This document shows positions 1-35,609 of a stretch of 64,000 nt of DNA, piece after piece. The translations under genes were made by a program, and so were the position numbers. Location of the stretch: contig CAJFCJ010000012.1 in the NCBI GenBank assembly GCA_904063045.1, positions 1,922,001-1,986,000 on the forward strand. The letters run 5' to 3'. The stretch is from Dimorphilus gyrociliatus. Taxonomy: Eukaryota > Animalia > Annelida. The first letter of the stretch is position 1; each line of letters opens with the position of its first letter. A model generated the notes under the pieces. That model was not told the DNA's origin. It saw only the letters and a program-made list of their open reading frames with translations, and ran no database searches.

Positions 1-1469
1 AAATGTTTATCATACAATCGAATAGACGGAAACTGTATCACTTCATTTTAGTCATGTCTGCTTGAAAAGGAAGAGTTTTCCTATTTTTATTATAGTTCAA
101 CATTCGTCACTTATAAATGTATAAATATAATACGAAACAGTGCATAATTAAACAAAAATTGTTCTAATTGCTAGGATAATAAATCTATAATTATTATTTT
201 TAGAATGTATATTTTAACAAACCAGTGAAAGCCTATACAGAAATTTAATTATCGGTTTTACATATAGAAAATCAAAGAAGTTAAATTATGTTTAAAAAAT
301 ATAATAAGAGACATTTTAAAAAGGCAAAGAGTGGTAAATTTAAAAGGAAACGTTTAATGATTAGTCATGACTCTTTAGAACTATTCTCTATTTTTCCCTC
401 CAAAACCTCTTTTACCCCCCACATAACAAATTGTAGCAATGTGTGTCAAAAATACGATGTGCTTTAATCTTTACACAAACAAAATTCATTGTATATCGTC
501 GATATTGATTGTTAAAAGCAATTATTTCCTGTACTTTATACTGTGTAGTTCTTAAGCTGTTATTGGGTTTTTTTTCCTCTCGTCAAGATATTTTTTTTTA
601 TAGTATAACTTTGAATAACAGTCTGATAAAAAAACTTGCATGTATCTTATCAAAATTTTATGTGTCTATGAAAGCCTATAATCAATAGTCTGGTAAAAGA
701 TAAAATACCTTATCTTATCAATAGTAATGTGTTTAATTAAATTATAACATCCGTGGCATAAAAAGATATTAGCAACTGAATCTATTCAACTTATTATGAC
801 TAATATAAATTCACTTGTGTAATATTACGTTTGTTTTAGTGTTGCATTGCTACTAATGATTAATTAGGCTAAATATTTTACATTGGTGTTATTGTATTTT
901 ATTATATGTATAACTAAGATAGTCACAACACAGAATATTGAATATATATGCTTCTTTTATGGTCTTCATATTAAAAAGTTAAAAAAAGCCTTTGTTTATG
1001 GAGGACTCAATAAAAACTGGAAATGTCAATAATTTCATCGTTATAGCTAAAAAAATTTTCCTAATTAATTGGATTTTTAACCGTCCAATTGAATTTTACA
1101 ACGACCCAAATATCCTTTCAAGTTATTACAAGTTAACGTGTCCAAAAATGTGAGATGACGTCATGTCTAAATATGTCGGCCAATGGCCGTTCAGAAAGAC
1201 TGTTTTTTTTATGAATATTCATTGAGTTGCCTTATTGAGTTTCCTTCAGCGTTTACTGTGCTGCAGGCCATATATGCGTATCTAGGGGTTTTGTTAATGT
1301 TTAATTTCTAATTACACTTTTTTTGTAATATTTTTCATGATAATTATTTTTTAACTCATAATAAACTAGATAATTACATAATTTTGCTTTTAAGCTCTTT
1401 GATAAGAGAACTATAAAGCTGAAACCCCTTGAAAAAACAAAAACTGGTGTAGTTCTCTGGTGTGGTTGT

Positions 1470-3897: not shown

Positions 3898-5144
3898 ACA
3901 GACAAATAGTATAGTTAATGAAAAAAAAAGTGCCATTTATTTAATACTTTTTCTAAATCGAAATGCTGTAATAGTTTATTTCGAATAAAATAAAATCTAT
4001 AAAAAGTGATATATGTTAATATAAAACATATTTCATTCTTCCAAAAGTTTATTGTATATTATTTAATCGGTAAAATTGCATCGAAAATTATATTCTAACT
4101 TCACAGTAACGAAGATGGTATTGGATTGCAATAAACCAATCGAAATAGTATGGAAATAATCTGTTATGAAGTATAAAAGTGTGTACTTGAGTACGAAAGA
4201 TAAATAATTCTAAAATGAAGCATAGGAAATAAATTGCAGATTAACTAAAGTCTTTTAGCTGTGTATAGTAAAGATATGTAAGCTAGAACTCCACTTGAAT
4301 TTTGTCACAAAAAAGATTATAGCAACAATCATTTACAGCGACGCATGTCATATTTTATATCAGAAAGATAAATGAATAGGAAAATATGAAAGGGAAAGAG
4401 AGATTTATCTATTAATCATGAAAAGTAGAAGACAATTAAAAAATATTTATAATTATTAATAATATTGTTTTCTAATTAGTCTGTAAACCATTTCAAACAT
4501 TCATCATAATGATGAATGAATTTGGAATATGATGTTACGTTGTTGAATTCTTTAAACAGTAATTCATAAATTAGAAAGAAAAAAAAACAGAATCATTCAA
4601 TAAATTAAAAATTGAATGGATGTTTTCAAGTTTGATGTAAAAAAAATAAAATAATAGTACATACAAAATATATATATATAAATATATATAAATACAAATA
4701 ATTGATAATAAAGTCAACTAACTGCTACAGTACGAAAAAGAATTTCTCGTAAATTAACGAAATTTGTCTCTTTCACTTAAAAAGTGAACTTTGGTTTTTA
4801 ACAATCAACATTTATAAAGAAAAAAAAATAGCACAATAAACTACAGTATTCCTTCAGAATTTATAGTTGCAGGATCAGTAAAACAATTATATACCGTCAT
4901 AAAACGTGTTGGAGAACAAAAGAGAATGAGGAGTAGGAGAGAAAGAAGTAAATTTGAGATAGGGCGGGAGAGAGAGATAAAGAGAGGTAGAGGAGAGAGA
5001 GAAAGATTAGCCCAAGGCGTACTAATAAAAAAATATTTTTTGAGCAAAAACTAGAATAAAGCTACAATAGATCTTTCGTTTTCTAGAAATTAGAAAATGA
5101 AATCATTGAAATTAAGTTCAGTTTTTTTTTCTCTCTCTTCTTTT

Positions 5145-6491
5145 TTAAACCCTAGTATTTCTTATTGTAGGTTTTTTTTCTGTTATTTCTTGGTAGATAT
5201 GGTCATTATTTGGTTGCCAAACTACGTCAGTTGATGGTTTACTATTCTCTTTTTCTATTGAATCGGCAACCGTAGCGTATGGTGGTTCACTCTCAGAATG
5301 TCTTTCGGAAATTTTTGTTGGCACTGGAGGAGTATCTACCATGTCGTAATCGCCATCAACTTGGTAGTTATTCTGCAACGTTTCTGGTGTGGCGCTTTTT
5401 GTTTTTAAGCTTCTGTCTCTTTGCTTATTCACAACCGAATAGATAGGTATATCATTTGAACTGGAGGGTGGAGCAGTTTTCCTTTTTTCCTTATTTACTT
5501 TCGAGTAAAGTGATTCTCTCTTTAACACAGGAGCAGCATCAGCTCCGCCTACAGCGCCTGCAACCTCTTCTGAAGTTTTCTTGCTTTCGTGATGATCATT
5601 TACTTGATCGTAATTAGGTTCTTGCTCTTCATTTATTTCTGAATATATTTGAGTGGTATAATCATTTGAGGACTCTTTAATTACATCATAATTTTGTTGA
5701 TCTTCGACAATTTCATAAACGGTACTATTTGGTGGGATAAGTATTTGTTGCTGAGCCTCTCTCTCTCGAAGAGAGGATAAAGATTCTCGTGCAGAAATAT
5801 CGGAATAGGGTGGCTCTTTACCTAAAATAAGAAAAGCCAGTAAGATAAACGCAAAGTAAAGAGAATATGAAAACGATTAACCTGTTGTACAGATATTTCC
5901 TGTTCGAGATGGTGGAACAGCTTGAATTATTTCCCTATTGTCATCAATTGTAATTTTAGCGTCTTCACTTTTCTCTGGTATTACAGGAGGAGCACCACTA
6001 GTATCGGCAATGGTTGAGTTACGTATAAAATTTGACTGTTCTCCAGAACACCTAGAAACGTGACCATTCAATGACTCGACTGGAGGAGCTACTCTCCCGG
6101 TAACAACTCCCGATCCTGATTGATTTGGAGTATCACCAGGAACACACTCGTATATATTTGCATCGTGAGCCGCCGGATTGACAGTATCTGGTACCTCTGT
6201 ATAAACAGCTTCAACAGGTTCGGTTTCAGGAGGAACTTGAGGGAGTTCTCTGGCCTGTCCATTACTTTGACGACAACTCTTTGACTTAATTTCACCTGTA
6301 GATCTGAGTCATACTAGGAATAAAAATATGAAAGAAACTACTTCACAATACACTTACTTGCTATCACCATCTTTCCTACATTTTGTACAAGCAAATATAA
6401 AAAACACAGAGGAGACGAGAGACGCACTAGCAACTAGGAAAATGTTAACATTTTGGAAATTTTCATCGGCCGTATTTAAATGCGGAGCCAT
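5145..6491 (-). CDS. PAG1/Cbp-like palmitoylated transmembrane adaptor protein (410 aa)
   Basis: Exons 6491-6358, 6303-5882 and 5821-5145 total 1233 nt in frame. The protein has a short ectodomain, one TM segment (IFLVASASLVSSVFFIFA), a juxtamembrane CxxC (CTKC), RELPQVPPE (PAG1 RELPRIPPE), about 12 Tyr motifs including LYSKVNK and IYSVVNK (PAG1 MYSSVNK), and a C-terminal NTRV (PAG1 ITRL). Confidence 0.75.
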
Positions 6492-7095
6492 CGTATCTGA
6501 AAGTTCGTGAAAGATTAGTATAAAGATATAAAGTAATTGATAAAAAAAAGCACGTACATTTTAAAGTTGAGTCAACAAGGCAGTTAAAGAGAGGATGTTG
6601 AGTTTTAGATTATCAAATATCTAGATCTTTAAGCATTTCGAATTATATTTACAACGTTTAGCTTCTCTCTGAAATTAATATTAACGATAATATTAAACAA
6701 GGCAGCTAATTGTTTATTTAAATGTATCGATTAAACAGTATTTGTTAGATGTATCGTTTCCCTTGATATCAACCTTGGTTGTCTAACTTCTCTTTTACGT
6801 ATTATAAATAAAACAGTTCGTTAATTAAAAGATTACATTAGTAATTTAGTAAAATTTAGGCTTTAGTAGGCCTAAGAAATGACCGATCACAGTAAATAAG
6901 GTATACATAATTAAGACATCTTTTGATTAAATAAAATGGAATCAACTTAACTGTTTTCTCTTAGGTGTAAATATGGACCGTAGATAAGAAAAGATTAGGA
7001 AACTTTTCTCAGTTAAATTATAGACTTCCTATTTATATCGCCATCTTGAAAGTTCTTCGACTAAAATCCGAAAGGCGAGCATAAATATTGAATTA

Positions 7096-7108
7096 CAGAT
7101 GGCGTTAG
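7096..7108 (+). promoter_or_regulatory. CTCF-like motif CAGATGGCGTTAG in the divergent PAG1-like/ASB promoter
   Basis: Sequence matches the CTCF core AGATGGCG; a YY1-like CGCCATCTT lies nearby at about 7039. Confidence 0.4.
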
Positions 7109-7272
7109 TGTTTGCCAAACGTTCGATTTTGAGCCTGTGCGCGGCTACAGTAGGCGGCTAAGGACTCGCATAATGCGATGCGACAAAACTAAGAATAGAA
7201 AGGCAAATGCTGCGATAATAACACAGGACAACACAGAATAAAATATTCCTGTAGTACTACTTCGATAAAGGG

Positions 7273-8544
7273 ATGGAATTGTACGCTGCTGTTCAGAAAG
7301 GAGATAATAACAAGGTAGAAGGTCTTTTGATGAAAGGAGCAGACGCAAATGCAGTTTTCGACGACGAACCAGTATTATTTACAGCTGTCGCTAACCGCGA
7401 AGAATTAATTATTAAACTATTGCTCGATCACAATGCTGACCCCAATAGGCCTTTCGCTGCGGATGAAGGATTTGGGGTGATGATGAGATATCCTCTACAT
7501 GAAGCCATATGCCGAAACGAGAAGGAAATAGATGTATGTTGCCGAATTGTGTGTCAACTTTTATCTAAGGGAGCTGATCCAGATGCCGTTGACGACTGTG
7601 GACAAACAGCATTTCACCATGCAGCTGCCTGCAACAATCTTCAAATTATTAAATTATTACTGCAGTATAAAGCTAATCCACTGTTAGTTGATGCTTCAGG
7701 TGATACTGCTTTAAGTTTATCAGCAAGTGAAGGTCATTATGAGATTACTAAATTACTTCTGGAAAATGGCGTAAATCCCAATTCACCTTCAAGCGCAAAA
7801 AACGCTCTTTGCACACCACATTCTGCAATTATTCAACTACTCTTAGAACATAAAGCAAATCCTAATGGATATGTCTCTGAGGATGACAGCAATACAACAG
7901 TTGTCGAGTCATTCTGTCGTTTGGGGAAGGTGGACATTCTTACAAAATTGGTTCAACATGGAGGAAAGTTGACTCAACGCTGCGGGGTATTGGCGGTTAA
8001 TAAAGCATCTCCAAGCCTATTGCATTTCCTACTAGAGAATGGTGTGAAGTTTGGATTTGAGACGTTGGATGCCATTTACAAACAAGCTAATGCTAAAGCA
8101 CTTCTAAGTTTGTATCTAATTGGTATTGATCCGAAAATTGACGATACCAAGATGAGATACCTACAAGTCTTATCTTTAAATTTTCCCACTATAAAAGTAG
8201 TTAGAATGTTGGAAACAATGAAGAGTTTAAATATGGAGGAGCCATCTGTGTCGTGTATTTTAAAACTTAAAGACAATCCACTTAGCTTAGCAAGAACAAA
8301 AGATGTTTGTGAATACTTTTTAACTAATCTTGGTAATCCTATGGCACTTAAGGGATTATGTCGCATAAAATTATACGAGGTTTTGGGTAAAGATGTATTC
8401 TACCTAAAATTTCCTAATTCACCCGAAGTCGAAAGATTTTTAAGATTTGAGGAAGCGATGGCAATTGGAGAAAAGTGTTTAGCATGCGATGAATGGATCG
8501 ATGAATGTTCTTGTGGAGAATTTGAGGATTATAATGAAATTTAA
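7273..8544 (+). CDS. Ankyrin-repeat and SOCS-box protein (ASB-like), single coding exon, 423 aa
   Basis: Contains several ankyrin repeats (GQTAFHHAAACNNLQIIKLLLQYKANP, GDTALSLSASEGHYEITKLLLENGVNPN) and a SOCS box (NPMALKGLCRIKLYEVLG...PEVERFLRF). Confidence 0.85.
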   Translation: MELYAAVQKGDNNKVEGLLMKGADANAVFDDEPVLFTAVANREELIIKLLLDHNADPNRPFAADEGFGVMMRYPLHEAICRNEKEIDVCCRIVCQLLSKGADPDAVDDCGQTAFHHAAACNNLQIIKLLLQYKANPLLVDASGDTALSLSASEGHYEITKLLLENGVNPNSPSSAKNALCTPHSAIIQLLLEHKANPNGYVSEDDSNTTVVESFCRLGKVDILTKLVQHGGKLTQRCGVLAVNKASPSLLHFLLENGVKFGFETLDAIYKQANAKALLSLYLIGIDPKIDDTKMRYLQVLSLNFPTIKVVRMLETMKSLNMEEPSVSCILKLKDNPLSLARTKDVCEYFLTNLGNPMALKGLCRIKLYEVLGKDVFYLKFPNSPEVERFLRFEEAMAIGEKCLACDEWIDECSCGEFEDYNEI

Positions 8545-9321
8545 TCAAGCAAAATATTTCCATATCAAAAAAAATATGATTAGGCAAAAAATCATTCCAC
8601 CATAAAGAATAAACTTGTCTTGATGCGTCCTACGTTCTATTAATCTCATAACTGTGTTCGAGAGTCCTAACATATTAGTGACGTCTAAAATTTTTTGCTT
8701 AGCGGTCTTCAAAGATGAATATTGATTTCGCACACTTATCATAATTGCTGTACCAGTGTCTATCAATTGATCCACTTGATTATTTGCATTTAATAACCGC
8801 GAATTATGATCCAGCGCAGCACCCATTTCAATTGAAGTATCATCGGAACCGTATGTTGAATTTCTACTGTCGTTTGTAGTATATCTTCGACTGAGCAGGG
8901 CTTCTTTGTCCCGACGCTCCTCTTCCTTTCTACATCTAATTAAAATTTTCTTACTTCTATGTATGGTTATACAAAAATTAATCTTTACCTTTTCAATAGT
9001 ATGCTTCGCATTGCAGCTTGTAGATGCTGACAATCATACTTTAATTGATCAACCTTCAATTTTGTGCTTTGGCGTCGCGATGGTATCTCTTTATGAACCA
9101 TCAATTCAAGTTTCTCGCAATTTGATACGATTAAATCCACTAGAGCCTTTACATATATTAGATATCTTATTAGAACCATTTAAAGAACATCTAATCTGCA
9201 ACAATACCTGCAATTCTCTCTCAACCAAAGGATAATTTTCATTTGTTGCGGTTTCTAACCGACCCAAACTATTCTGTACATCCAACACTATTCTATGGGT
9301 CTGGTGATAGAGAGAATCCAT
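8545..9321 (-). CDS. GOSR2: Golgi SNAP receptor complex member 2 (membrin), 220 aa
   Basis: Exons 9321-9208, 9146-8989 and 8935-8545 are in frame. Diagnostic segments: MDSLYHQT, KLKVDQLKYDCQHLQAA, Qb-SNARE KQKILDVTNMLGLSNTVMRLIERR, and a C-terminal TM anchor. Confidence 0.95.
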
Positions 9322-9764
9322 TTTCCCTGCTAACCCTCAAGTAATTATTTCGAAATTTGGTCAACTGGTCTAACTACGTGGAGCGGAAACGGAAATTGAC
9401 ATCGTAGTTCGTAATTTAGGATATTTTTCATAAGGACTGTAGGAGGATTAGGCTAACATTGTTACGAATATTTTTGTCTCATAATAATAAAGTGTTTGAA
9501 AATTTCCAATGAAAAGTTGTTTCAAACAAATAAAGTTAACACCATACTCATGCATACAATATTTCATTTAAGTAGGCTATTGATATTTAAGATTTCACCA
9601 AGAGAATGTATCCCTCATGATTGAGTCTTCACCGTTGAAATATGAAGGTTAAAATACTTTTATAATCGCAAAGTATACTTTCCCAAATATTTTTTTCGTA
9701 ACGGAAGTTGCCTTCTGCTAACGAAAAAATTTCGACATTGTTTTACTTGAGTTTTTACTCAAAT

Positions 9765-9777
9765 TTAACTTAGCAAC
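9765..9777 (+). promoter_or_regulatory. RFX X-box-like site upstream of PIH1D3
   Basis: TTAACTTAGCAAC matches 11/13 of GTTRCYNRGYAAC, about 150 nt upstream of the ATG; a second degenerate site GTTGCCTTCTGCTAAC is at 9707-9722. Confidence 0.4.
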
Positions 9778-9929
9778 CTATACATGTAAGTTTTAAAAAT
9801 ATATTGAACAAACAAATCTAAAATTAATATAACTTTTTAACCACTAATTTAATTTTTATTTTGGCTTAGTCATATAAATCATCGATTTCGATTTTGTTTT
9901 CGAACGCAACTTTATTTTCAACTGGAGAT

Positions 9930-10841
9930 ATGGAAGGAATGCTGCCTCATTCAAGCCTTATGGCTTTACAAGATTTATTAAGTCCCGCTGACGACATAGA
10001 TCAAGACAGTGAAGATGAAAAAGTATACATCTCTTGCATTCAACTTTTTTCATTGGTTTATAGATTACTTTCAACAGCCCCAAACGGCAGCTTCATCGAT
10101 GACACCGGCAAGTATAGGCAACTCAAAGAAGATTGCAGGAAAAGGTATCTAGAAGATTTGTGATTATTATTATTTTTGTTATATAAAACTACTATTACTG
10201 TTTGTAAAAGCGGTTGAGAGAAATAATACTACAAAAGATTCAAATAATAAAGATATTTGGGATGAGGAAGAGATACAACCTGGCGCAGAAAATATAGACT
10301 ACGACGACCCACGACCAGAACCCGAGTATTTTTTTTATCTATACAGTATACATTGCTAAAAAGAAATTAATTAATATTCTTATTAATTAGATACGAAATT
10401 ATTTATAAACAAGCTGTAACAACGGAGGATGTTTACTTACAAATGAGCAATAAATCTCAAGCCACTGCCAGTTGCGATCAAATTGTTGTACGTAATTCAG
10501 AATTATAATTATACATCTAATAAATAAGATATTGTTTATTAATTATTTTCTAAAGGTTAGAATTAAATTACCAGACTCAAAGATTTCCGAAATAGATTTA
10601 GACGTGAAAAAGTCTTTTATTGATTGCAGATGTCCAAATTAGTAAGTATTTTTATTAGAATATAATTTACTTGAAACTATATATATATATCTTTATTAAA
10701 TTATAAAAATACAGTAAACTAGGCTTACATCTACCTCAACCAGTTGATCATAAATCTGGAAAGGCTGAATGGAATGGAAAAACATCAACATTATCAATAA
10801 CGTTAAAAATGATTCGAGAATATGATTTTATGAATTTATAG
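9930..10841 (+). CDS. PIH1D3: PIH1 domain-containing protein 3 / dynein axonemal assembly factor 6, about 194 aa
   Basis: Exons 9930-10008 (weak GTGAAG donor, uncertain), 10064-10144, 10211-10325, 10391-10487, 10556-10641 and 10715-10841. Motifs: MTPASIG, KDIWDEEEI, PEPEYEIIYKQAVTTEDVYLQM, YKLGLHLPQPVDHKSGKAEW. Confidence 0.92.
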
Positions 10842-11100
10842 ACAATAAATAATTAAAAAACTTTGTTTTATTTCATAAAAACTAAGAAAAAAAGAATGAT
10901 AATATTTCTAGAAAGAGTAATAATAATAATAATAGTAATAATAGGTCTTTTTTTATCAAATTTTCTTCTAAAACTATGAGGAGAGAACGTTTTACTTTGC
11001 AAAGTTTATTTATAAGTTTTTTCTTATAAAAAAAAACAATGGTAATACAATGAAATATGGTTAAAATTTGTAAGTTAAATGAGTGTTATAAGATATATTC

Positions 11101-19784
<8,684 letters not shown>

Positions 19785-27525: not shown

Positions 27526-28830
27526 TCACAAAATTTCAAATTCTTCTTCAGAATCGAATTTTCTATCTATTAATGTGAAATCTATCAATAGGAAATGGAA
27601 GAAAAACAAAAATGTGATATTATTATAAAATGACTGCTAAAATTCATTTAAAAATTTACCATTTTGTCCTGCATTTGAATTGTCCTCAGAAGAAACAGAT
27701 ACAGTTACTGAATTTAAGGGTGAATAATGCTGTAATTTCCCCCAGTGTTTAGGTCTATTATTAACAACTTCGAATAGTTTTTGAAATTTTTCTCTGGCTA
27801 AATATTGCCAGTCGTGTAGAGCTTCGTATCTTTCAAATAAAAAGCCTATGGCCAAAGATGGGTCTAATCCAGAACAATCAATTTTTCCAGCATAGTCACA
27901 GTGATATGTTTCATCGTTCTCGAAATCTTTTTCTTGACATACATGGGGATCTAAATATAATAGATCATTTTCGCACTTACCAAAAAACCAATGTGCGTGG
28001 TTTGGTCTTCCTCCCAATAAACCAACGAAATATTCCGAGTTAAAGGTATCCAATAATGGTTCGATATAGCACGGATTAATTTCAGATAACCCTAATCTCA
28101 AAGGTATAAACAGGAGTATTGGCTTCCAATTCTTTTGCTTGCGGTTATGATAGTCGACTTGAACGCCAGCCGTTGTATAAGTTGCAATTTTTTCAATATC
28201 TTCAAGTACAACAGTAGAATCCATGGCAATATGAAGAGCAAGGTCACACCAATTTTCGAAAGCAGATAGTTTCCTTAGAACGTGAGCTACAGTGCTAGGA
28301 CCAAACCATTGCCCTATTTCTTTACCCTCACTTTCCCCCATTGAAGCTATTTGATGAATAGAAAATGGTGCTAATTTTTTATCATGAAACATTTTTAATA
28401 TCTTCCAATAAGTTGTATTTGTTGTGCCTTTTGTCCACCTCCAATCTCTCCCTAAATGCCTTACAATGAGAGAGTGGGATAGCATCATCTGTCCACACCT
28501 CAACATACAACCCCATCCTGAATCGGTGGTTGGTCCACCAATACCACCAATAGCATTAAAACTTTTTCGGTAAGTTAGCCATATTCTTGACATAACATCC
28601 TTCCTTAGATCTTCTAAATCTGAACAACGAAAAAAAGTAATTAGACATTTAAAAATACTAAAGACAGGAATAGTTAATATTCCATTTATCAAAATAAATC
28701 AAATAATATTAACCTTCTGCAGTAGACGGTGTATAATTAACGCCTAAAATGCAAACTCTTTTGCAAGACTGTAAAAACTCCTTGTAATCCAGGTTTTTAT
28801 TATCATACGTGATACAGTTGACTATTGCTG
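27526..28830 (-). CDS. ATG4B: Cysteine protease ATG4B (first micro-exon with ATG not located)
   Basis: Exons 28830-28714, 28619-27660 and 27581-27526. It has the catalytic DSGWGCMLRCGQMML, YLDPH, and a C-terminal LIR DSEEEFEIL (human EDEDFEILSL). Confidence 0.92.
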
Positions 28831-29495: not shown

Positions 29496-31571
29496 ATGGC
29501 GGACCTAACGGACGCCGAACTTCGACTTGAACTGATAAAATACGGTTATACACCAGGCCCAATAGTCCCAAGCACTCGAAAAGTTTTAGAGAAGAAGCTT
29601 CAAAAGCTTAAATCAGGAAAATTAAATTCCAATGCTCTGGTAACGGTTAGCACTGATGAAAATGATTCGGATGCTCCTTCAAAATCGACGCCGAAATCAA
29701 ATAGGAGAAAGAAAAGTCCAATCAAATCATCTAGCACTAAACAAGCATCAGTTACGAGCACTCAATTACTAGATGAAGACGATCTGGATACCAATTCAGT
29801 AGGTTTACAATGCAGTTTCAACGAAGGAATCGAAAGACCGTTAATCACCGGAAGGAGACCTCTTGGAGCAAATTCACCTTTTACCAAACCGAAATTCTAT
29901 TCAAGTACACCGAAATGTGATGCACCATCATTAAGTAGCTATTCAACGTACCGAAAATTTAGCTCAGTTACTCTCCGATCAGGAGATACAACTAAAACTT
30001 TACTTAAAACAGAAGAGCGTAAGAGTTCTTCAGATGACAACAGTTCATGGCGTCCCCAAAACGTTTCAGCTTTAATTATATTATTTTTTGGGGCTTTTTT
30101 ATCCGTTATTGTATATTTGTACTTAAACCAGAGGCTGCTTGGTATGGAGAGAGCCCATGTTCAGGCGATTTGTAATAAGGATGGTCCAAAGAGTTCATTA
30201 TGCTCTTTGCAACCAGAAAGAGTAAAATCTACTCAGCAAATAGCAAAGGCTATTTACGACGTTCTAAATACGGGAGAGGGTAATTATTAGTATTTTCTGT
30301 ATTCTTATTCGTCCAATATTATGCAAGTTATTTGTTTTTTATTTCACCTTAGGTAACAGAATTTGTAAAGACGAATCTCTATCATTATATATGCCGCAGG
30401 CGACTGTCATTAAACAGATATCTGTTATTTTGAGACGGGAAGTGACTTCTAACGAACAAAAATTTGCCTACAACCTCATCTCGGAAAACCCTGAATGGCA
30501 TATGCGTTTATATGATTCTTCCAAAAGAGAAACGTCTCTTCCAGAGAGTGTCCAGTATCTTCGTTGTATAAAACCGTCACTTCCTCTATCTTGTAGAATT
30601 TCTAGATCTTTCAAAAGGCTTGCACTATATATTCTGACAGGAATAGCTGGAGTTTTGATGATAATTAGCCTCTTTGTATTTAGAAAATATTGGAAGAAAA
30701 GGGCTGAAAGGAGAATGCATGAAATGTATCTCATAATAGACAATATCATTAACTTCTTCGAAAGTGAATCCAGACAAAAGAGAGACGATGGAGAAGAGGA
30801 TGTTTTCTTTCCTATTGATCACGTTCGCGATCGACTTATTGAACCCAAAAAACGTCGTCAATTAGAGAAACTTTGGACTGAGGCTATAAACTTTTTATCG
30901 GATAATGAAAGCCGATTGTCTGAACAAATTAGAGTTGTAAATGGGGAAGAATTTCGTGTTTGGAAGTGGAACGACGGTGCTTTGAATGGTAAGAACAAAG
31001 TATGGCAAGGAAAAGGTAATTAATTTCCCTATAGATAGAGAAAAATTTAGTATTAACAAAAATTCCTTCTTTATTGATTTAGCCGTATCAGATAATTGTA
31101 AAGGAGACGACCCCGTTATAGGATACTACGAATGCTTGAAAATTAGAAATATGTTTGATCCTGACACGTTAGTATATTAAATATTATAATTCCGAAATAT
31201 TTTCGTTGCTAATTAATTGATAATTTTTTCCAAATAGTGAAGTTGAAGAAAATTGGCATGTAGCAATTGAAGATGCAATATTGGAACAGTGTAAAGAATC
31301 TGACATTGTTCATATCTCTGTAGAGAAATCTTCAAAAGAGGGTTGCGTGTATGTTAAATGCAGGACAAAATTGGATGCAGGAAAAGCCTTCAAGCAAATG
31401 AGGGGTCTTTGGTTTAATAGACGCCTTATATCAGTGAAATACTTGTCATTAGAACGCTATCATAGGCGTTTCCCGAAAGCTGTTAGTTGTTGTGAACGCC
31501 TCGAGCCCAGCAACGATGAACGCAGATCATTAGCTGTACCTTTTTTTAATTCCGTCACGGAAAAATTTTAA
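29496..31571 (+). CDS. LEMD3: Inner nuclear membrane protein MAN1, 621 aa
   Basis: Exons 29496-30279, 30353-31015, 31083-31167 and 31238-31571. It has an N-terminal LEM domain (LTDAELRLELIKYGYTPGPIVPSTRKVLEKKL), two TM segments, an MSC region, and a UHM/RRM (CLKIRNMFD...EGCVYVKC). Confidence 0.95.
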
Positions 31572-34659: not shown

Positions 34660-35609
34660 TACTCATAACATTCTCTAGACATAACAGCTTATATTATTGT
34701 AATATTTATTATTTTTGCTGTTAATTCGGAGATAACTGCAAATTACTCAGAGAAAAGTCTTAATTATGGTAATTGCCGTAATTAATTAGATATTAAAAAA
34801 GAGTATATTTTTAGTAAATTAGCCATAATTTTCTTTATTAATTAATACAAAAAACTATTAACCAACACTAAAAAGACCTTCTATATCTTCTGTTTATCCT
34901 CCTCTCTTCTGTTCCAAACTGCTCCACTAAACTTAATATGCAAATTAGTTTAATGGACAAAACCCTTTCAAAATTTCTTTTAAAACAGAAAGTAGATTGT
35001 ACATAAGTTATGCTCTGGCTCTAGGTCAAATCGTGCAAGGATTTCGCCTTTTACTAAATCCTTCCGTGGACTAGAGTCCCTTTATGGGCTTCCATCCTAA
35101 TTTTTGTTTGCCTCAATCTAATCTGAGGCTAATTATCCTAACAACGAAAGAAAACTGGTTCATTCCTTATTAGAATGAAAGAAAAGAACAAACAAGGGAT
35201 CTTGACTTTGTTTTGTGATTATTTCTTTTTATTATAATAGATCAAGTGATTAAAATTGAGACATTGTCTTACTAACAAAAACAATATTCATTAATAAAAA
35301 ACATTAAACACCACTACATCACTGAATTCCGTAAATAGGACAATAAAAAAAGATAGTAGGTGTTTTTTGAGGATGAGGAGGTGGGGAGGGGGTTTGGGAA
35401 GGGCAAGATAGGAATTAGTAAGATCTTAAATTGTAAAAGACTTTTGGGGACATTTTAAACAATATTCAAGAATTGGCGAACAGGGATTTTCCTTAGTTTT
35501 TGAAATACGAGAACGTCTCCTCGATTTATTAAAATTTGTATAAAAATCTGAACAAATACGCACAACAAACGATATAAGCACGAGAAAAAATTGTAGACAA
35601 TAAAAACAC

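Follow-up and report, generated by a model that had tools for sequence, protein, structure and literature searches.

Csk lacks a membrane anchor, and vertebrates rely on a small set of adaptors, PAG/Cbp among them, to carry it to the Src-family kinases (SFKs). To our knowledge, almost nothing has been established about how invertebrates recruit Csk, although both Csk and the SFKs are conserved in lineages ranging from choanoflagellates to humans (PMC3492796). Our literature search returned no PAG-like adaptor, nor any similar transmembrane adaptor protein (TRAP), described outside vertebrates. Here we analyzed a 64-kb stretch of DNA (the window; contig CAJFCJ010000012.1, positions 1,922,001 to 1,986,000) from Dimorphilus gyrociliatus, a miniature marine annelid with a compact 73.8 Mb genome (PMC7854359). 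The window is AT-rich (31% GC) and gene-dense, and its minus strand carries the gene for DgyrCDS9027, a 410-amino-acid protein that may be the first such adaptor outside vertebrates.

Human PAG has a 16-residue ectodomain, a transmembrane (TM) segment at 17-36, a palmitoylated CSSC motif, an isoelectric point (pI) of 4.4, 9 of its 10 tyrosines in YxxV/L/I and proline-rich sequences at 131-138 and 257-263 (PMC2213442). The palmitoylated CxxC directs PAG1/Cbp to membrane rafts. The YSSV of human Cbp is the Csk SH2 site (PMC3492796), and the phosphopeptide ISAMpYSSVNK (Y317) binds the Csk SH2 domain at 0.5-1 uM (PMC5071372). RELPRIPPE and the C-terminal ITRL both occur in a human PAG1 peptide array (PMC6277618), and the I429A substitution in ITRL abolishes binding of EBP50 (NHERF1) (bioRxiv 10.1101/2024.11.29.625440).

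How does the annelid protein compare? DgyrCDS9027 (410 residues, against 432 in human) is like PAG1/Cbp in its predicted type III topology, its 16-residue ectodomain, a juxtamembrane CxxC followed by basic residues and a long, acidic, disordered tail with nearly all tyrosines in YxxV/I. The tail has RELPx(V/I)PPE preceded by C.QS, a second APP-V-P-K motif, a hydrophobic residue followed by YSxVNK, the block YATV.D..EK..NS and a penultimate tyrosine 15 residues before a C-terminal TR(L/V). It differs in that the CxxC-to-RELP linker is ~25 residues long rather than ~90, that there are two Csk-type sites instead of one and that EP(D/N)Y lies on the opposite side of the Csk site; there is also no significant sequence or hidden Markov model (HMM) match (12-17 bits on pieces, none at full length), and the protein is from an annelid. 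On balance, we think it fairly probable that DgyrCDS9027 functions in the manner of vertebrate PAG1/Cbp, as a type III and probably palmitoylated TRAP of the PAG type on which Csk and SFKs dock.

Gene model, transcripts and predicted product

The adaptor gene is real and expressed. Its coding sequence lies in three minus-strand exons (6491-6358, 6303-5882 and 5821-5145) separated by introns with GT..AG borders, and the translation (44 + K + 140 + G + 224 = 410 residues) is letter for letter the database protein DgyrCDS9027 [Dimorphilus gyrociliatus] (P0002). We aligned public sequencing runs to window positions 4300-7300 and found in one of them (X3, 2017) a 1701-nt transcript contig with 0 mismatches in blocks 4793-5819/21, 5880/82-6303, 6358-6496 and 6558-6668. 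This contig skips exactly 5822-5881 and 6304-6357, plus a 61-nt intron (6497-6557) in the 5' untranslated region (UTR); thus, both coding introns are removed exactly as predicted. Because an in-frame TAA TAA stands upstream in the spliced 5' UTR, the ATG at 6491 is the true start. A contig from a marine metatranscriptome (X2), ~95% identical, carries the joint 6303/6358 and has a loose end at 5823 that runs into the end of exon 2, and near-identical exon pieces were found in a coral metatranscriptome (X1). The coral and marine contigs lie at window 5617-6421 and are 95-99% identical to the gene, which indicates that D. gyrociliatus or close relatives are present in those samples and express it there.

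The features of the gene and its predicted product are as follows (window coordinates, in the direction of transcription).

6558-6668, minus strand: 5' UTR exon with a short in-frame upstream open reading frame closed by TAA TAA (X3 contig)
6497-6557, minus strand: 5' UTR intron, 61 nt (X3 contig)
6358-6496, minus strand: start-codon exon (ATG 6491) with the 16-residue ectodomain, TM segment and CTKC
6390-6443, minus strand: predicted TM segment, residues 17-34; Kyte-Doolittle hydropathy peaks at 2.37 at residue 17, and no other segment is hydrophobic
6378-6389, minus strand: juxtamembrane CTKC (C35, C38), then RK; candidate palmitoylation site (human CSSC is palmitoylated, PMC2213442)
6304-6357, minus strand: intron 1, 54 nt, GT..AG, phase 2 after residue 44, seven residues past CxxC; absent from the X3 and X2 contigs
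5882-6303, minus strand: coding exon 2, residues 45-186, with CRQS-NGQA-RELPQVPPE, VYTEV, IYECV and APPVIPEK
6225-6251, minus strand: RELPQVPPE, class I SH3-ligand-type (RxLPxFP, where F is any hydrophobic residue); human RELPRIPPE; the PAG HMM aligns here (profile 124-167)
5970-5993, minus strand: APPVIPEK, second proline-rich motif, kept in orthologues; human APPPVPVK
5822-5881, minus strand: intron 2, 60 nt, GT..AG, phase 1 at residue 186; absent from the X3 contig, X2 loose end at 5823
5145-5821, minus strand: coding exon 3, residues 186-410 and stop, with 12 of the 14 tyrosines, both YSxVNK motifs, YATVAD and NTRV; 68% identical to the relatives' proteins P0001 and P0003, all Tyr motifs kept
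5490-5510, minus strand: LYSKVNK (Y291), first putative Csk-SH2-type docking motif; LIME1 is the sole Pfam match of piece 265-330 (13.3 bits)
5424-5444, minus strand: IYSVVNK (Y313), second putative Csk-SH2-type docking motif; human Cbp peptide ISAMpYSSVNK
5268-5279, minus strand: YATV (Y367), inside PPYATVADSIEKENS; compare human LYATVKDFEKTPNS
5148-5159, minus strand: NTRV end, class I PDZ-ligand-type (T-x-V-COOH), invariant in three orthologues; human PAG1 ends in ITRL (PMC6277618 Table 2)
4793-5144, minus strand: 3' UTR, as far as the transcript contig reaches (X3 covers 4793-5819, no mismatch; stop codon 5145-5147)

In the predicted protein, 16 residues of ectodomain precede one hydrophobic segment (17-35; Kyte-Doolittle 2.37, next best elsewhere 0.54), followed by CTKC (35-38), RELPQVPPE (63-71), APPVIPEK (149-156), LYSKVNK (290-296), IYSVVNK (312-318) and the C-terminal NTRV. 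Valine or isoleucine stands at +3 of 12 of the 14 tyrosines (binomial P = 6.6e-9), and seven have V/I/L at -1 (P = 0.006), where hydrophobic residues fit the substrate preference of SFKs. SLYSKV fits the pattern of an immunoreceptor tyrosine-based inhibitory motif (ITIM) and TVYEIV that of the corresponding switch motif (ITSM). The tail is acidic (pI 4.8), of low complexity and disordered (predicted local distance difference test, pLDDT, of 0.38 in the Atlas model), and a full-length Pfam scan returned no domain at E <= 10. With a short ectodomain, a single TM segment, membrane-proximal cysteines, a disordered tail of Tyr motifs and no folded or enzymatic domain, DgyrCDS9027 falls, as far as its sequence tells, within the palmitoylated TRAP class (PAG, LIME, SCIMP, LAT, NTAL, GAPT and others); from the same motifs we infer its palmitoylation, its phosphorylation and its binding to Csk, SFKs and PDZ domains.

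An earlier sequence-only reading of the window had proposed the splices 6358>6303 and 5882>5821, which the zero-mismatch X3 contig confirms. It had also described a spliced 410-residue product with a tiny ectodomain, one TM segment, CTKC, RELPQVPPE, LYSKVNK, IYSVVNK, NTRV and about 12 YxxV/I sites, and all of these are present in the sequence. The vertebrate hallmarks that it named (CxxC palmitoylation, RELPRIPPE, MYSSVNK and an ITRL end that binds EBP50) are borne out in the literature (PMC2213442, PMC5071372, PMC6277618, bioRxiv 10.1101/2024.11.29.625440). One correction applies: annotation had not missed the gene, the same model being already public as DgyrCDS9027, but without a name or function.

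Motif order and constraint

We took human PAG1 from its published overlapping 12-mers (PMC6277618 Table 2) and compared it with DgyrCDS9027 by visual inspection, aided by a small number of short patterns. Seven motifs or more correspond to these human PAG1 peptides, and their order is the same.

Ectodomain, TM and Cys motif: human 16 residues, TM, FLCSSCDREKK; D. gyrociliatus 16 residues, TM, FACTKCRKDGD
First proline-rich motif: human KCHQS-RELPRIPPE; D. gyrociliatus SCRQS-NGQA-RELPQVPPE
First two Tyr sites: human PYEVL, LYETV; D. gyrociliatus VYTEV, IYECV
Second proline-rich motif: human APPPVPVK; D. gyrociliatus APPVIPEK
Csk-type site: human ISAMYSSVNK; D. gyrociliatus ESLYSKVNK and IPIYSVVNK
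YATV block: human LYATVKDFEKTPNS; D. gyrociliatus PYATVADSIEKENS
C-terminal block: human NDYESISD, 7 residues, TRL (ITRL end); D. gyrociliatus DHIYQEITE, 7 residues, TRV (NTRV end)

In each protein the C-terminal block places its tyrosine exactly 15 residues from the C-terminus. The two putative SH3-ligand sequences are in the same order as in human and are kept in the orthologues; TPPVPTKI, which resembles a proline motif, is not conserved there. When the tail was shuffled 200,000 times with its composition preserved, RELP..PPE arose at a rate of 5e-6, YS.VNK at 5e-4, YATV.D at 3e-4 and APP.{1,2}P.K at 1.5e-3, and the C-terminal pattern in 0 of the 200,000; with 12 YxxV/I sites, chance alone would combine serine at +1, N at +4 and K at +5 in one or more of them with P = 0.005, and in two of them with P = 1e-5. 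These statistics are post hoc and overstate significance, and even when they are heavily discounted the motif patterns exclude chance.

Orthologues were found only in a few Logan assemblies, from two or three related dinophilid-like worms at 64-71% identity: one relative is represented by a full-length transcript (P0003, 397 residues, 68-71% identity), a second by genomic contigs (P0001, P0004; L004, L014) in which the exon structure and the WD40, SNARE and ankyrin neighbours are as in D. gyrociliatus. The ratio of nonsynonymous to synonymous substitution rates is ~0.15 at a synonymous divergence of 1.3-1.6 against two relatives, and residues -3 to +5 around tyrosines are 80-83% identical, against 66-68% elsewhere. 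The adaptor is under purifying selection, with conservation focused on its motifs. Sixteen residues precede the single hydrophobic segment in all three orthologues. Invariant are (i) FACTKC followed by R/K, CRQSNGQ.RELPQ(V/P)PPE, VEAVYTEV, DANIYE.VPGD, GAPPVIPEKSEDAKI and EPPYSDISARESLSSLRERE; (ii) the Tyr cluster YE(I/V)VED-YDVIKE-NDYTTQIYSEINEE-NYD.V; and (iii) LKRE.LYSKVNK, PIYSVVNKQR.R.LKTKSATPETLQ, EPPYATVADSIE, DHIYQEI and NTRV. The second intron of the orthologue in a related species has apparent GC-AG borders (ccag|gcaagc ... tttcag; L004 250-320, L014 6340-6460), against GT-AG in D. gyrociliatus.

Kinases and a proposed docking mechanism

The D. gyrociliatus genome (G000, 77.9 Mb) yielded at least 51 SH2 and 148 tyrosine-kinase exon matches, and we inspected six SH2-kinase loci. 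One of them (L007; G000:C1:3436090-3437484, minus strand) is a Csk orthologue whose adjoining exons encode SH3, SH2 and an entire kinase domain. Rat Csk (1k9a) matches the SH3-SH2 part at 172 bits, with the next class at 87; for the kinase part, Csk reaches 268 bits and Abl 213. The SH2 domain contains FLLRDSTNYPGD, and the protein lacks both an activation-loop tyrosine and a C-terminal tail. Two genes are of Src-family type (L006, tail ...SETQYQEQ; L011, start MGNCC, tail ...EPSYKDVFS), with HCK, FYN, FGR and SRC as best matches, and a third SH3-SH2-kinase gene (L010) also has a tail tyrosine. By these domain matches, Csk and SFKs are encoded in the genome.

What might the adaptor do with them? 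The TM helix and acylated C35 and C38 would hold the 372-residue acidic, disordered tail at the inner leaflet of the membrane. An SFK could then dock through its SH3 domain on RELPQVPPE and phosphorylate the many (V/I/L)-Y-x-x-(V/I) sites, of which pY291 (YSKVNK), pY313 (YSVVNK) or both would recruit the worm Csk through its SH2 domain. Csk so positioned would phosphorylate the tail tyrosine of membrane-bound SFKs and switch them off, while the remaining pYxxV/I sites may hold SFK SH2 domains and the C-terminal -TRV may tie the complex to a PDZ scaffold.

Homology, convergence and neighbouring genes

Is DgyrCDS9027 related to PAG1 by descent? We compared it with Pfam, which includes PAG (PF15347; gathering score 27 bits), LIME1 (PF15332) and SCIMP (PF15050), and made wider searches, those at full length with P0002 and the others exon by exon. 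In a pre-set sliding-window scan (66-residue windows, n = 20, 24,736 families), PAG was the top family for P0003 1-66 (15.3 bits, E 0.011, profile 21-64) and P0003 34-99 (17.4 bits, E 0.0026, profile 128-167). It was also the sole family for the piece P0002 45-110 (12.2 bits, E 0.094, profile 124-158). Cutting the proteins into pieces spares the alignment the long deletion that the short CxxC-to-RELP linker would otherwise require, and PAG then ranks first. The window around YSxVNK matched a single family, LIME1 in P0002 (265-330, 13.3 bits) and SCIMP in P0003 (14.2 bits), at profile positions that we take to be the Csk sites of these proteins. Four of the six window matches at E < 0.1 were PAG, LIME1 or SCIMP; the other two were Cadherin_C_2 and a bacterial peptidase.

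In the ESM Atlas, exon 3 alone, which has neither TM segment nor RELP, was closest to three PAG/LIME1 clusters (0.83-0.77), which we treat only as a lead. The named neighbours of the full-length protein were PAG (0.91), LIME1/PAG (0.90), SCIMP (0.88), LIME1 (0.85), A36R (0.85), GAPT (0.82) and UL135 (0.82), with 9 of the 10 best family-bearing matches in agreement, and all Atlas clusters carrying the PAG family are chordate. LIME1 and SCIMP, vertebrate palmitoylated TRAPs that bind Csk, share the short ectodomain, TM segment and Cys-motif design and are Atlas neighbours at 0.90, 0.88 and 0.85; they differ in having much shorter tails with fewer motifs and neither RELP..PPE nor TR(L/V) ends, and their scores are sub-threshold. 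Poxvirus A36R and human cytomegalovirus (HCMV) UL135 likewise join a TM anchor to a disordered tail of kinase and adaptor docking motifs (Src/SH3-SH2); they are viral, unrelated in sequence and without a Csk-type site, an analogy of design only.

Near-complete collinearity, matches beyond the ligand cores, the same ectodomain length and Tyr-to-C-terminus spacing, and PAG as top HMM at two collinear places together suggest homology; overall we put homology to PAG1 at about even odds, and we think a very diverged homologue likelier than a convergent resemblance. That DgyrCDS9027 is a true PAG1 orthologue, such that the PAG/Cbp-Csk-SFK module and TRAPs in general were already present in the protostome-deuterostome ancestor rather than being a vertebrate invention, we put forward tentatively, as slightly the less probable side of the question.

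A series of results weighs against kinship with PAG. The Pfam scans, per exon and with full-length P0002 and P0003, found no family at E <= 10, and the PAG matches on pieces, at 12-17 bits, are 10-15 bits under the 27-bit cut-off; in P0002, the fixed window 34-99 had no match and 1-66 preferred Cadherin_C_2. A HMMER profile of exon 3 matched only dinophilid proteins (P0001, P0002) among 1.84e9 cluster representatives, and word-index searches of 5.8e9 clustered proteins, together with a scan of metagenome contigs that used the alignment as query, gave close relatives at most. Intermediates in other annelids, molluscs, deuterostomes or arthropods were not found in those searches. The PDB sequence search with exon 3 gave no relevant match. 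In the Atlas, unnamed arthropod clusters (0.92) rank ahead of PAG for the full-length protein. One motif is out of order, the worm EPNYDQV preceding the Csk sites and the human EPDYEAI following YATV, and a NHERF-type partner was not identified in the genome with the EBP50_C model, which gave two 17-bit matches, the better of them a tektin-like coiled-coil reading frame. To these must be added the post hoc nature of the motif statistics.

The PAG, LIME1 and SCIMP HMMs, run over all of G000, missed the adaptor gene, and the N-terminus of the PAG HMM scored slightly better at two other loci; the weak matches elsewhere are TM regions, so the HMMs lend no unbiased genome-wide support. The best genome-wide match to the PAG N-terminus (17.4 bits, profile 8-61) is a first-exon-like reading frame at G000:C4:744406-744570 (plus strand; L002 1513-1815) with a tiny ectodomain, a TM segment, CSCC and an acidic DDYEDID stretch, which may belong to a second TRAP-like gene in D. 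gyrociliatus. The other, at G000:C12:71316-71465 (minus strand; L003 1303-1698; 17.3 bits to the N-terminal part), has a longer N-terminus, a TM segment and CSCS followed by basic residues.

The sequence-only reading had taken the protein for a PAG1 orthologue or a convergent equivalent outside vertebrates, and the PAG1/Cbp architecture and motif set on which it drew hold. The HMM link to PAG1/LIME1 did not materialize at a significant level (0 families for the full-length protein, 12-17 bits for PAG on short pieces), nor did a relative beyond dinophilid-like worms. Its deeply conserved Csk-Src circuit lacks support in the form stated: the exhaustive profile search finds no relative outside those worms. 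With neither a significant HMM link nor more distant relatives, orthology and a conserved circuit are what we infer, and such a circuit may be entertained as a hypothesis.

Alternatively, a Csk/SFK adaptor may have arisen independently in the dinophilid lineage, its motifs shaped by the specificities of Csk SH2, SFK SH3/SH2 and PDZ domains. The lack of relatives beyond dinophilid-like worms in both protein collections, the sub-threshold Pfam matches and the one displaced motif all fit this alternative. So does the nature of the matched motifs, every one a domain ligand (RxLPxFP with F hydrophobic, pY-S-x-V, T-x-V-COOH), which also speaks against kinship: because SH2, SH3 and PDZ domains are conserved, convergence could yield part of the resemblance. 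Sequence change is also faster in the adaptor than in the genes beside it: identity is 64-68% for the adaptor, 81% for the ankyrin gene and 91% for the SNARE. Fast evolution of a disordered tail would, however, by itself explain why intermediates went undetected. Convergence accounts poorly for matches beyond the known ligand residues (the C.QS that precedes RELP and the PPE that follows it, the NK that completes YSxVNK, the D..EK..NS downstream of YATV), for the identical Tyr-to-C-terminus spacing and 16-residue ectodomain in an almost fully collinear protein, and for the alignment of the PAG HMM to two separate parts at collinear profile positions. We judge independent origin unlikely, while ranking it first among the alternatives.

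Another possibility is a general phosphotyrosine adaptor or cargo protein with no Csk role, whose YxxV/I sites recruit an SHP2-type phosphatase (ITIM/ITSM-like), PI3K, Shc or Crk, or act as YxxF endocytic signals (F again hydrophobic). YxxV/I is common to many SH2 ligands and AP-2 sorting signals, SLYSKV and TVYEIV fit ITIM and ITSM, and the genome has at least 51 SH2-encoding exon matches. A predicted complex of the worm Csk SH2 domain (L007) with P0002 280-325 scored 0.21, below the mark of 0.34, in a model from which phosphotyrosine is absent; this score weighs neither for nor against binding, so nothing in it ties DgyrCDS9027 specifically to Csk. However, human Cbp offers Csk SH2 a ligand of micromolar affinity, ISAMpYSSVNK, which the two invariant motifs with a hydrophobic residue before Y-S-x-V-N-K match, two YSxVNK among 12 YxxV/I sites have P = 1e-5, and a tail carrying twelve sorting signals would be unprecedented, all of which makes a Csk-free role improbable. 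Finally, that a fast-evolving, disordered orphan membrane protein resembles PAG1 merely through composition and post hoc motif picking, as its low complexity (pLDDT 0.38), its lack of a significant database match and our comparison by eye might suggest, is scarcely credible in view of 12 of 14 tyrosines in YxxV/I (P = 7e-9), purifying selection with motif-focused conservation, four of six window matches at E < 0.1 falling to three of 24,736 families, and an expectation of 5e-6 RELP..PPE per shuffled tail.

DgyrCDS9027 thus belongs to, or mimics, a known kind of protein, in a taxon where that kind was not expected; its gene is annotated but unnamed. As a PAG-type docking adaptor it would be a concrete candidate in a small, laboratory-culturable annelid, and its bearing on the question of how Csk gets to the membrane in animals other than vertebrates makes a bench test worthwhile. 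Its motif syntax, TM-CxxC ... RELPx(hydrophobic)PPE ... YSxVNK ... TR(L/V)-COOH, could serve to find counterparts in other phyla. In this protein, kinship may have been preserved solely in short linear motifs and their order, beyond what BLAST or HMMER can detect; if it is a true orthologue, other invertebrate orthologues, perhaps among the unnamed arthropod Atlas clusters, would have been overlooked because only such motifs survive.

The gene order WD40, SNARE (V-SNARE_C/Sec20-like), ankyrin-repeat, adaptor is shared with a relative in SRR23372228 (window 7273-12199; L014 1-4924). Further genes of the window are ATG4 (27640-28692, minus strand) and a LEM/MSC-domain gene (29496-31020, plus strand). 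None of the worm's neighbouring genes (ankyrin-repeat, SNARE, WD40, ATG4, LEM-domain) is known to flank human PAG1 at 8q21.13. In the 5' region, a minority joint, 6668>6952 (GT..AG on the minus strand), leads to a further 5' exon of the adaptor within the transcribed 5' region of the divergent ankyrin-repeat gene (7273-8544, plus strand), such that the two genes would share or overlap a promoter region. Lastly, the window contains a complete U5 spliceosomal small nuclear RNA gene at 35010-35130 (plus strand; Rfam RF00020, 82.6 bits).

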